DNA from: Intoshia linei
Taxonomy: Eukaryota; Animalia; Orthonectida
Assembly: GCA_001642005.1 (NCBI GenBank)
Contig: LWCA01000038.1
Location: forward strand, 5,112 to 69,111
Length of the DNA: 64,000 nt
Direction: 5' to 3'
Each line of letters opens with the position of its first letter. Position 1 is the stretch's first letter. Below the pieces are notes generated by a model. It ran no database searches. It was not told where the DNA came from and was given only the letters and a program-made list of their open reading frames with translations. Shown piece by piece: positions 18,401 through 23,100 of the stretch. The position numbers and the translations under genes are program-made.

Positions 18401-19959
18401 TTTACGCGCATGCACAGTGATGTATAAAATATAATTTTGACATTAAAAAAATAAAAAAAAGTTTCCCTTTTTTTTAAATAAAATCAGCCCTATAAAATAA
18501 ATAAATGATTTTATTTTATAAAATTAGCTTTTTTTTATGTTATGTTATGTATTATGTTAAAAATTTGTATGGCTTATTCTAAATAAACCTGAGCATCCAA
18601 TATGCAGTTAAAAAATATTGTGGGTAATATCAAAATAAGTATAATTGTACTCTAATATGGGTAGTAAAAAAGGTTGGAAAACACTGGTGTAGAGTATCGA
18701 CGAACTAAGGAACTTTCCAATTATAGAGAGAATTTTATATAATATAGAAGCCCTTGGTAGAGCTAAATACTGTTTGTACGCATTACGAAACATTTAACAT
18801 ACAGTTTAAAGTAAAATTGAAATACGTCAAGTCAATAATTCCAAAGATTTCTACAGTGAGAAAACATGGACAATAGACATGTAACATTAAAACTGAAATA
18901 TCCAACCTTTGTTATAAGCAACGGAGCTGATTGACCAGGAATTAAAGCAGTAGTTATAATCATATCAACATCTTTAGCTTGTTTTTCGAATAAAGCCAAT
19001 TCTGCTTGATGAAATTCGTCCGACATTTTTTTAGCATATCCACCACCTCCTTCACCAGCTTCCTAATTGCCTTAAAATAATAAATTGACAAATTAACCTT
19101 AATAGAAACTGTCAAAAACTCTGCCCCCATAGATTCAACTTGTTCTTTAACTTCGGCTCGTGTATCAAACACTCTAACAATCGCTCCCAGATTTTTGGCG
19201 GTAGCAGTAGCAGATAACCCAGCGACACCACCACCTACTACTAGGACCTAATTTTTAAAATTACCTACATAAAAACCGAATGAATAAATACTTTAGCCGG
19301 CGGTATATTCCCTGCCGCAGTTATCTGTCCTAAATATAAAATAATAAGATTATCCGATATACATGTATTAAAAAATAGATACCGCCAAAAAATCTTCCAA
19401 AATAGTTGGATGCGTCAATAACCGCCCTATACCCGCCAATATTTCCCATAGCACTCAAAGCATCTACAGATTGAGCTCTAGTGATTCTGGGTATACAATC
19501 CATACCAAAAAGATTAATATTTTTTTCTTTGAGTTTTTCAATAATTTGTGTATTTTTAGATGGATAGGCAAAGCAAAAAATGTTTGATTTATTTTTCATT
19601 TTGGAAATTTCTTCAATTGTAGGTATTTGCATTTTTAATAGAATGTCACTCTGTAAAACTTGATCATTAGGCAAAATTTTGCTACCGGCAGATTCATATT
19701 CCTTGTCCGAATAACTGGCATGTTCACCAGCATTCGTACTAACTACAACGTGATAACCCAGATCAATCAACTTTTTAACATGATCCGGTATTAAGGAAAC
19801 TCTTTTTTCAGTTTCAGAATACTGTGAATCTTTAGTTACTCCAATAGTTAATGATTTAATTGGTACTTTTAAATCATTGCTTTGACTCAAATATGATTTT
19901 TGGAATTTTTTGTAATTTTTACAAAAATTGGACAAAGTTTTACCTCTAATACAATACAT
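9473..19959 (-). CDS. NNT: NAD(P) transhydrogenase, mitochondrial (fused dI-dII-dIII), multi-exon
   Basis: dI motifs ([60 protein letters not shown]), dII ([43 protein letters not shown]), dIII ([60 protein letters not shown]). The introns I traced are GT-AG and join in frame. TGA at 9473-9475. Confidence 0.97.
9979..10487 (-). mobile_element. pogo/Tigger-derived non-autonomous DNA transposon in an NNT intron
   Basis: 24-bp TIRs (cagtaaactatgtgttataagaac / gttcttataacgcatagtttactg, 1 mismatch) flanked by TA on both sides. Internal ORF 10140-10346 reads [34 protein letters not shown], similar to the Tigger DDE motif PxNTTxxxQPLDxGIIxxxKxxYRK. Confidence 0.85.
11629..12032. mobile_element. hAT-type MITE in an NNT intron
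   Basis: Termini cagaggcgttttaag / cttaatacggctctg, with a perfect 8-bp TSD CATGTAAT (11621-28, 12033-40). A second copy lies at 17727-18200. Confidence 0.85.
13957..14620 (-). mobile_element. hAT/Buster element remnant with transposase fragments
   Basis: Begins cagtggttctcaac. The minus strand at ~14380-14570 encodes frameshifted [14 protein letters not shown] and [11 protein letters not shown], motifs of Buster/Charlie-type transposases. The right end is approximate. Confidence 0.65.
16417..17223 (+). mobile_element. Non-autonomous Helitron-family fragments
   Basis: Starts a|TCCTTACTTACATA and the body is homologous to 28296-29200 and 35404-36350. An opposite-strand 5' end (gtaagtaagga) sits at ~17213-17223. 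Confidence 0.6.
17727..18200. mobile_element. hAT-type MITE (same family as 11629-12032) inserted into a 29-bp repeat array
   Basis: Near-identical to 11629-12032 over several hundred bp. Flanks ATCTAATC / ATCTGATC form a 7/8 TSD. Confidence 0.8.
18319..18686. mobile_element. hAT/Buster MITE
   Basis: TIRs cagtgattcccaacct / aggttggaaaacactg, with a perfect 8-bp TSD GTGTAGAG that has the central TA typical of Buster targets. Confidence 0.85.
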
Positions 19960-20158
19960 GTCTAATTTGTGAAACTATCGCAATATTCACTGATAATTTT
20001 CAAGATTTATAGAAATTCTTGCTTTGATACAATGTCAAATTTTTAACTTCATTAACCTTGTAAAAACTTGGAAACTAACATTTATTGGATAATCATTGAA
20101 AAGTTGTATTACATTTTATTGTGTACATTTGTTGAACTGCCAATATCTGCATCTCAAT
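19960..20158. promoter_or_regulatory. Putative bidirectional promoter shared by NNT and IDH2
   Basis: Only 199 bp separate the two divergent predicted ATGs (19959 on -, 20159 on +). No repeat is recognisable inside. The TSSs are not observable from sequence. Confidence 0.6.
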
Positions 20159-23100
20159 ATGAAACTTTTTCAGACTATAAAAAAAATTAAACTAGCCAAA
20201 AGTTTTTCAACTTGTACTTTTACGTTTTATTTGAGAATAAGTTTTTAGCTCTAAGAATTAAGGTAGCTAGACCGATTGTGGAATTGGATGGTGATGAAAT
20301 GACAAGAATTATGTGGAGTTTTATCAAGGAAAAGGTTGGTTTCTTTTGGTTATATTTTTTTTTGTTTGAAATGATATATTACAATATTAAAATTTAGCTA
20401 GTATTTCCTTATCTCGATTTAAATGTAAAATATTACGATTTAAGCATTACTAACAGAAATTCAACAAATGATCAAGTATTTGCTTGGGTTAAACTTTTTT
20501 ATTAACATTTTAGGTTACAATTGATTCTGCGCATGCAATTTTAAAACATAATGTAGGTATTAAATGCGCTACAATTACACCAGATGAAGCCAGAGTAAAA
20601 GGTTTTTTTATTTCATTGATTTTGGTACCGTCAATTTTCATCATAAAATTAGAAATTAGAAATTTTTTTCAGTTATTATTTTTATGATTTTAATTATTAG
20701 TTTATTGACTCCGTTTTTGTTTATTTGTTTATTATTATTTGTTTTGTTTCAGTTTTACTTTTAGTTTCATTTTGTAAATAATAGTTTAACATTGAATTAC
20801 CGCTTAAAATTTTAAGTTTTAAGTTTCTCTATTTATGTTATTTTTCAAATTTGGAATGCATCATAAACTTTTATGCGTCTTTAAAAATTTGTATATTATA
20901 TATATATTATTTGACTTTAAATTATAATATGTTTTAACATACAGTTCTAATTAAAATATCTTTTTTTTGGTATGATTACTATGTAAAATTTAGAATTTAA
21001 CCTTAAAAAAATGTGGTTGAGTCCTAATGGAACAATAAGAAACATAATTGGGGGTACAGTATTCCGAGAACCTATTATTTGTAAAAATATTCCAAAATTG
21101 GTACCAGGTTGGAAAGAGCCAATAATCATTGGACGTCATGCATTTGGTGATCAGGTAATTTAAATTTTTTTTAAAAATGCAATAATATTGATAATTGTAA
21201 TTTGAATTAATTATAATTAATAATTAAAACATTGATTTCATTTTAAAATAATTATTTATTTATTGTAATGCATTTTACTTTATATCATTTAAAATGTCCA
21301 TCAATTATAATTATGGATTTAGGATATTTAATATTATTTACATGTATGTTATTCTATTAATATTATTTAAATTATTGCTCGTAAGAACTACTATAATAAT
21401 ATAACATTATCGACTAGTTTAACTGTTATATACTACTTACAAACAGCAGCTAACTGTTCGAGGGCCAAGTTTTTAATTTAGTGGACGTGTATTAATATTA
21501 AAGTGAATGATCTTAAAAACAATCAAATTAGTTTTTTATGACGAAAATAAAAAAAATGTATATTATTATGCAGCAAATTAAATGGAGATTATTATCTATA
21601 TATGTCTTTTTTAAATTTAAAAAAAGTCAAAATTGGAATAGCCCTAGTGGCCATTAAACTTTTTGACATGGGGGCCGGAATAACAACAAAAAAATCGGCA
21701 GGCCAGATGGAAAATATACATGACGGTATTTTAAATTACGATTTAAAATTTAAGTTAGTGAATTAATAAGCTTCTCATGATCTAGAATTGACAAGTCGAT
21801 AGTATACATATATTATATTATTATATATTATATAATATAGGTGTATATTTAAAATCTAAGTTGAAGATACAGTAAAACCTCTTTATAAACAAACGATTTT
21901 AAAAATTTAACGACTAATTTGTTTTTTGGAGTATCAAAAAAGCGTGATAACTTATCACTGATAAGTGTCATAAAAATTCCATGCAACGTAAATTGTTGAC
22001 ATGTGAAAATGTAATAAACCAGTGCTTTTCAACCAGGGGGGGGGGTCGTGAGAATTTGAAAATTTTATGAATACATTTATTTATTTTAATATATTATTGA
22101 CAGTAATAATGTTACGAAAATATTTTTACATTCTGAAAATTTTTTATGCTTATAAGGGGTCGCGAACACAAAAAGGTTGAAAACCACTGTAATAAACAAA
22201 TTATATAGGATTAATATATTTTTAAAAGCATAATAATTTGTTTATAGAGGGGTTTGTTTATAAAGAGGTTTCACTGTATATGATAATTTGTAAGATATTC
22301 CGGTGTATTTTGTAATAAATTTGTAATTCGCGGGCCGTAGTTTAGTGGCCACTGCACTAGTACGTAGTAGAGAGATTCTACTTTAAATTGTACAATGTAC
22401 AAACGAAATTAGATTATTTTGATTCATTTTGTAAAAAATAATTATTTTTTTTAAATTCAAAAAAATTAAATGATTTTCTTTTAAAAATACTGTATTTCGC
22501 AAAATACCTCATGGTGTTTTTTTTAATTTCAAAGATAAGTTTTTATTACAATTATGTAAGCTCTTTCAGTAGGAAATTTTCATTTCCAACTATGAAAGTT
22601 AAGAAATAAATTGAAAAAAATTAAAATAATGACGGATAAACTTTCAAATGACAAACAAATCGCTGCAATATTGTTATATTTTATTACAATTTTATGTTAA
22701 CCAATTAATATAAATACTTACAATGTATTAATGTTTTACATACACCACAAAATATCTGACAATTTAATATCATTTTAAATTATTAAGTTAATAATAATAG
22801 TTTATAATTAACTAAAATAAGTTGATTTGGGTTAAAGTAATCATGTAAATATCTAGAATTTTAAAAGTGGAATATCTTTTGAAGACGATCTCGAAAAAAA
22901 ATCTAAGAAAAACTAGCTTCTGTTAAAACTAATATGATTATAATGATATATATTATATATTTTAACATGTTACATTTTTCTGTGTTGCACCGTGTTATAT
23001 TGTCTACTTATATTTGCATTTTATAGTAATTTGATTTATTTTAGTATAAGGCAATAGATATGGTTTGCGTTCAAGCAGGACAATTTGATGTAATTTTATT

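Follow-up and report, generated by a model that had tools for sequence, protein, structure and literature searches.

Coupled mitochondrial genes arranged in conserved head-to-head pairs, like bidirectional promoters in general, are already a known category of genomic arrangement (PMC1487180, PMC7817982, PMC3514665). In mammals, bidirectional promoters, defined by less than 1 kb between start sites, concern about 10% of the genes, among which co-expression and functional association are over-represented (PMC1487180, PMC7817982). Similarly, conserved 5′-5′ gene pairs were found to be enriched for co-expression, and the survey performed by Irimia et al. tied kept adjacency together with 5′-5′ orientation to shared regulation and excess co-expression (PMC3514665). 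For example, HSPE1-HSPD1, coding for the mitochondrial chaperonins 10 and 60, is conserved in 5′-5′ orientation across animal phyla, with very little intergenic sequence, and reaches vertebrates, Capsaspora and fungi, and both its shared promoter and the co-expression of its genes (r = 0.81) were demonstrated; HADHA-HADHB, coding for the subunits of the mitochondrial trifunctional protein, is another conserved ancestral microsyntenic pair whose members are strongly co-expressed (PMC3514665). The present analysis concerns a pair that resembles these systems in the orthonectid Intoshia linei, found in a window of 64,000 nucleotides (contig LWCA01000038.1, positions 5,112 to 69,111 of the forward strand; assembly GCA_001642005.1). 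Here, NNT, coding for the proton-translocating NAD(P) transhydrogenase, occupies 9576-19959 on the minus strand, and an NADP-dependent isocitrate dehydrogenase (IDH) gene of the mitochondrial (IDH2) type occupies 20159-26698 on the plus strand, so that the two diverge from start codons placed 199 bp apart. The same head-to-head pair was found in other protostomes, and these observations suggest that NNT and IDH2 are probably, though by no means certainly, co-regulated through a shared bidirectional promoter.

Reduced nicotinamide adenine dinucleotide phosphate (NADPH) is supplied in mitochondria mainly by NNT and IDH2, and a cycle coupling these two enzymes has been proposed since the 1990s. 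They have been treated together in redox defence and in reductive carboxylation (PMC3363418, PMC4454159), and both human genes fall within a single small group of mitochondrial genes enriched in heart and muscle (PMC8788487). Like the chaperonin pair, NNT-IDH2 joins coupled mitochondrial proteins; however, its products form no complex and share a cofactor pool, and it is known from its arrangement and protostome conservation, whereas a shared promoter and co-expression were demonstrated for HSPE1-HSPD1. Likewise, it shares with HADHA-HADHB the condition of a conserved mitochondrial enzyme pair, although NNT (inner membrane) and IDH2 (matrix) are separate enzymes and not subunits of one complex. 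On start-codon spacing, the pair conforms to the definition of mammalian bidirectional promoters, since less than 1 kb and no gene lie between the two; nevertheless, the latter are typically associated with CpG islands carrying GABP, NRF1, YY1 or NF-Y sites, while the NNT-IDH2 spacer has a G+C content of 26% and none of these motifs but two CCAAT pentamers. The bacterial pntAB operon, in which the same enzyme chemistry is encoded and gene order serves co-expression, is polycistronic and codes for the subunits of one enzyme, unlike the two divergent monocistronic genes of animals; one such operon (P0139) was a non-animal match in the NNT search. A preliminary description of the locus, made from the sequence alone, had supposed this kind of arrangement to be undescribed in animals, which does not stand for the type, given the documented HSPE1-HSPD1 and HADHA-HADHB (PMC3514665), and apparently stands for the NNT-IDH2 pair itself. 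The pair was not found in the searchable literature on the bidirectional promoters or synteny of either gene, and may sit in supplementary microsynteny tables; what appears to be new is this particular pair and its conservation across protostome phyla.

Conservation had been set beforehand as the test of the proposed module. NNT exon 1 was compared with protein cluster representatives, a cephalopod NNT was then used as the query, and the contigs of the named NNT proteins were inspected. The outcome favoured this idea: an IDH2-type gene was the immediate divergent upstream neighbour of NNT, with no gene called between, in six other protostome species from five phyla (Table 1). The pair thus keeps a constant 5′-5′ orientation in Orthonectida, Annelida, Mollusca, Nemertea, Bryozoa and Arthropoda, the latter represented by a crustacean and an insect. 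The neighbours were confirmed as NADP-IDH genes by tblastn with the IDH exons of the window (20249 to 26698), which showed 64-93% identity, these exons also matching the IDH genes of four other animals one by one, and the gene ranges used to calculate the gaps start with ATG at both ends. Since the pair occurs in six other protostomes from five phyla, the arrangement seems to be old and not a quirk of one compact genome; a chance origin of the same head-to-head pair in seven lineages cannot account for it, and the comparison, whose sampling consists of protostomes, dates the pair at least to the protostome ancestor. Among protostomes, NNT-IDH2 therefore reads as a conserved ancestral microsyntenic pair in the sense of Irimia et al. 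(2012). In addition, a DCX-domain gene was observed just downstream of NNT in Capitella (L013:21283-21663) and Watersipora (L018:31334-39978), and the conserved unit may be a block, IDH2-NNT-DCX, rather than the pair alone.

The identity of both genes, as named in the preliminary description, was borne out by Pfam and solved-structure matches, both gene models being searched exon by exon. NNT exon 1 matched the Pfam domain AlaDh_PNT_N (1.5e-34) and the solved chains of E. coli PntA and ovine NNT (about 1e-36), aligning to residues 51-217 of the latter, and a homologous large first exon was present in all the other species examined. The downstream minus-strand exons matched AlaDh_PNT_C, PNTB_4TM and PNTB in succession down to the stop codon at 9576; from this order, NNT is judged to be the complete single-polypeptide eukaryotic form, with domains dI, dII and dIII in order in one gene. 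It is single-copy in the searched assembly (41.6 Mb, 3520 contigs). Its N-terminus presents about 32 residues rich in Lys, Arg and Ser ahead of dI, which resemble a presequence and fall within the range of the N-terminal extensions of the other species compared (31-56 residues). The best database match to this exon was P0001, a partial protein labelled 'Bonamia ostreae' with 44% identity, encoded in a contig of 943 bp; since an oyster parasite would be a strange closest relative, the contig may be a contamination or be mislabelled.

The IDH exons, in turn, matched Pfam Iso_dh as well as NADP-IDH chains of known structure (1e-24 to 1e-27 for individual exons). Vertebrate mitochondrial IDH2 chains all outscored the cytoplasmic IDH1 chains in 4 of the 4 exons tested against solved structures, which agrees with the mitochondrial type first proposed, the assignment being one of per-exon scores in these four exons. 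The protein ends in NLNW, and no peroxisomal signal of the -SKL or -AKL type (peroxisomal targeting signal type 1, PTS1) was found at this C-terminus. The gene looks intact, because the 45-nt exon carrying the catalytic Tyr has clean splice sites; this exon (23045-23089) encodes Tyr-Lys-Ala-Ile-Asp in place of the usually conserved Tyr-Lys/Arg-Ala-Thr-Asp. It is the single NADP-IDH of the genome, other Iso_dh matches lying on other contigs and having no match to the NADP-IDH exon queries, and a dual location of its product is possible for that reason. Judging from their N-termini, the products of both NNT and IDH2 may be targeted to mitochondria.

The spacing of exactly 199 bp (19960-20158), also put forward in the preliminary description, is confirmed for the start codons, the IDH start being a modelled one. 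The first IDH-homologous exon begins at 20249, out of frame with the ATG at 20159; in the model the two are connected by an exon of 43 nt and a GT..AG intron of 47 nt, with a junction in phase 1. From the same ATG, a second possible donor at 20214 would leave 18 codons and an intron of 35 nt. The 5′ ends could therefore have been mis-assigned, the true first exon of IDH2 or NNT lying elsewhere and the genes overlapping or having distant start sites. This would fit with the dependence of the IDH ATG on the modelled intron as its sole tie to the homologous exon, with the unusual shortness of the modelled presequence (14-18 basic residues without Asp or Glu, compared with 29-42 in the other species), with a candidate basic 13-residue open reading frame followed by a phase-1 GT inside NNT (19280-19319), and with an AG placed 2 nt upstream of the NNT ATG that could be an acceptor. 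Nevertheless, no start within the spacer other than the ATG at 20159 is both presequence-like and phase-compatible, and the splice sites and length of intron 1 resemble those of IDH2 introns 2-4, the neighbouring introns having 35-60 nt; the published median intron of Intoshia linei has 57 bp (PMC6543705). Moreover, a presequence exon (29-42 residues, rich in Ser, Ala, Arg and Lys) is found in five of the six IDH gene models from other species, the Capitella model being truncated at its 5′ end, and in those five (Eumeta, Lottia, Daphnia, Tubulanus and Watersipora) the first IDH exon contains the presequence only and its phase-1 end lies a few codons short of the same conserved segment, so that intron 1 has the same phase and nearly the same position as in Intoshia. 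The NNT extension has a length usual for other species, and in-frame stops occur just upstream of both start codons, 18 nt from the ATG of NNT and 69 nt from that of IDH. Mis-assigned 5′ ends are thus considered improbable.

No further copy of the spacer exists in the 41.6-Mb genome, whereas the introns on both sides match dispersed repeat families, in agreement with the earlier remark that the spacer is free of insertions and the introns are laden with them. The NNT intron stretch 15700-18800 gave 4893 first-look candidate copies and the IDH2 intron stretch 21200-23450 gave 994; 40 copies were scored for each, which lay on other contigs with 73-97% identity. The long introns of both genes are filled by several families of short repeats (about 160-470 bp), at 17729-18203, 21646-21812, 22011-22194 and 22574-22998, whose candidate copies across the genome number from dozens to thousands.

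The favoured explanation, co-regulation of the pair, would proceed as follows. A head-to-head NNT-IDH2 pair inherited from the protostome ancestor or earlier would have had its start codons closed up to 199 bp in the compact orthonectid genome, and because these 199 bp must contain both 5′ untranslated regions and both core promoters, the two genes would share a promoter region, which would act as a bidirectional promoter. Shared cis-regulation most probably kept the pair together and would fix the ratio of two enzymes that work on a common NADP(H) pool in the matrix, with NNT producing NADPH from NADH by means of the proton gradient and IDH2 making or consuming NADPH with isocitrate/2-oxoglutarate. 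We infer that the transcription start sites lie in the spacer, that the two genes are co-expressed and that selection is the cause of their retention.

Several observations weigh against this explanation. In addition to the IDH2 presequence, much shorter in the Intoshia model than elsewhere, intergenic distances in this genome can be short anyway, and the composition of the spacer gives little help to a simple model of shared elements: its two CCAAT pentamers are barely above chance. A single TATAAA on the minus strand (20006-20011) was rejected as promoter evidence, since this hexamer occurs at chance frequency, 268 times in the window versus 264 expected. Across the seven spacers, none of the known motifs searched (NRF1, GABP/ETS, ERR, CRE, YY1, Sp1, DRE, NRG, ARE and others) and no unbiased 7-10-mer common to them rose above the shuffled controls. 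Furthermore, no IDH was found within 10 kb upstream of NNT in Limulus, in the tapeworm Taenia asiatica or on one further animal contig (L011), nor in the approximately 3.1 kb upstream of NNT on the contig of the monogenean Cichlidogyrus, in which an RNase P subunit gene lies 351 bp from NNT. In vertebrates the two genes are unlinked, being located on different chromosomes in human and mouse. Linkage of NNT and IDH2 is dispensable, given the absence of the pair from the stretches examined in flatworms, Limulus and the L011 contig and its unlinked state in vertebrates.

Some of these observations also bear on passive retention, according to which an ancestral pair with independent core promoters would have persisted because rearrangement breakpoints seldom fall in so short an intergenic region. 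The lack of a conserved element among the seven spacers, the repeated loss of the pair without obvious consequence and the spacers of 1.3-3.3 kb in other species, which leave space for two promoters, speak for this alternative. Seven lineages separate since the protostome ancestor have nonetheless kept adjacency, 5′-5′ orientation and the absence of an intervening gene, and the spacer was held at 199 bp while nearby non-coding DNA gained many repeats. Moreover, conservation at such depth is confined to a few hundred gene pairs, of which the 5′-5′ ones are enriched for co-expression (PMC3514665). Passive retention is consequently regarded as a rather unlikely account of the pair, while shared regulation remains the preferred one.

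A third origin would lie in bacteria, the linkage being a relic of an alphaproteobacterial icd-pntAB cluster transmitted by the mitochondrial ancestor. Alphaproteobacterial relatives are indeed close for both enzymes, and bacterial chains were among the best solved-structure matches; however, no pntA or pntB match was present within about 10 kb in any of the 80 bacterial loci with a eukaryote-like icd (mostly Alphaproteobacteria, 1.29 Mb in total), and this origin was rejected as extremely improbable.

In a broader and more tentative reading, which we rate as somewhat less than probable, NNT-IDH2 would be an ancestral bilaterian, possibly older, 'matrix NADPH module', a regulatory unit of two genes kept head to head for more than half a billion years by selection for a fixed expression ratio. 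The human genes map to 5p12 (NNT) and 15q26.1 (IDH2), and chromosomes 5 and 15q25-26 have many duplicated gene pairs in common; the absence of the pair in vertebrates could result from reciprocal loss after whole-genome duplication. If such a module exists, it would represent independent genomic-context support for the debated substrate cycle of transhydrogenase and isocitrate dehydrogenase. It is rare for a gene order dating back to the protostome ancestor to be shared by animals as unlike one another as a moth, a water flea, a limpet, an annelid, a nemertean, a bryozoan and a strongly reduced parasite, and such conservation provides an independent evolutionary argument for a need to express NNT and IDH2 together. 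The pair also offers small and tractable candidate promoters for the matrix NADPH balance, of 199 bp in Intoshia and, in Daphnia and Lottia, about 1.3 kb, as well as a clear case for asking how regulation changes once the two genes are separated, as they are in vertebrates and flatworms.

Table 1. Coordinates of the NNT-IDH2 features in the Intoshia linei window, and start-codon gaps of the same pair in other protostomes
Feature	Position or locus	Strand	Details
NNT (proton-translocating NAD(P) transhydrogenase)	9576..19959	-	many exons; stop 9576-9578
NNT exon 1	19383..19959	-	577 nt; ATG 19959-19957; donor GT 19382-19381
Dispersed repeat in NNT intron	17729..18203	.	~470 bp; 40 scored copies on other contigs, 83-92% identity
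Start-codon spacer, candidate bidirectional promoter and both 5′ untranslated regions	19960..20158	.	199 bp; 26% GC; single-copy
NADP-dependent isocitrate dehydrogenase, mitochondrial (IDH2) type	20159..26698	+	~14 coding exons; stop 26696-26698
Modelled IDH2 exon 1	20159..20201	+	43 nt: ATG plus 14 codons and 1 nt; 5 K/R, no D/E
Modelled IDH2 intron 1	20202..20248	+	47 nt; GTTTTT...TTTTTAG; phase 1
IDH2 catalytic-Tyr exon	23045..23089	+	45 nt; clean AG/GT sites
Pair in Eumeta japonica (Lepidoptera, moth)	L010		ATG-to-ATG gap <=3188 bp
Pair in Capitella teleta (Annelida)	L013		ATG-to-ATG gap <=3315 bp; IDH model 5′-truncated
Pair in Lottia gigantea (Mollusca)	L014		ATG-to-ATG gap 1376 bp
Pair in Daphnia magna (Crustacea)	L015		ATG-to-ATG gap 1284 bp
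Pair in Tubulanus polymorphus (Nemertea)	L017		ATG-to-ATG gap 1513 bp
Pair in Watersipora subatra (Bryozoa)	L018		ATG-to-ATG gap 3141 bp

Other transhydrogenases were recovered in the searches. One of them (P0021), carried by a 12.7-kb contig of the ENA sample ERZ28612991, is an intronless NNT of 1008 residues whose identity to the animal NNTs is uniformly about 50%; this contig is gene-dense, with DUF5824, a PIF1 helicase and a papain-like protease, and looks like that of a giant virus or a protist having its own transhydrogenase. Numerous 'PntB' proteins from bacteria (P0306-P0425; Porphyromonas, other Bacteroidales and some Firmicutes), each some 1016 residues long, scored 550-790 bits against a 192-residue dIII query from the Capitella NNT, and such scores for so short a query imply several tandem dIII-like copies per polypeptide.

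Regarding the surroundings of the pair, the window is AT-rich, with a G+C content of about 26%. A gene with PPR repeats (LRPPRC-like) adjoins NNT, at 19-699 on the plus strand and with neighbours to about 8000. The other genes observed in the window code for an Ion_trans channel (30086-31312), an MCM helicase (52172-54920), a nuclear receptor with zf-C4 and ligand-binding domains (57472-58839) and a KH-domain protein (59643-60467). With about eight genes per 64 kb, the region is not especially compact except for the NNT-IDH2 spacer.

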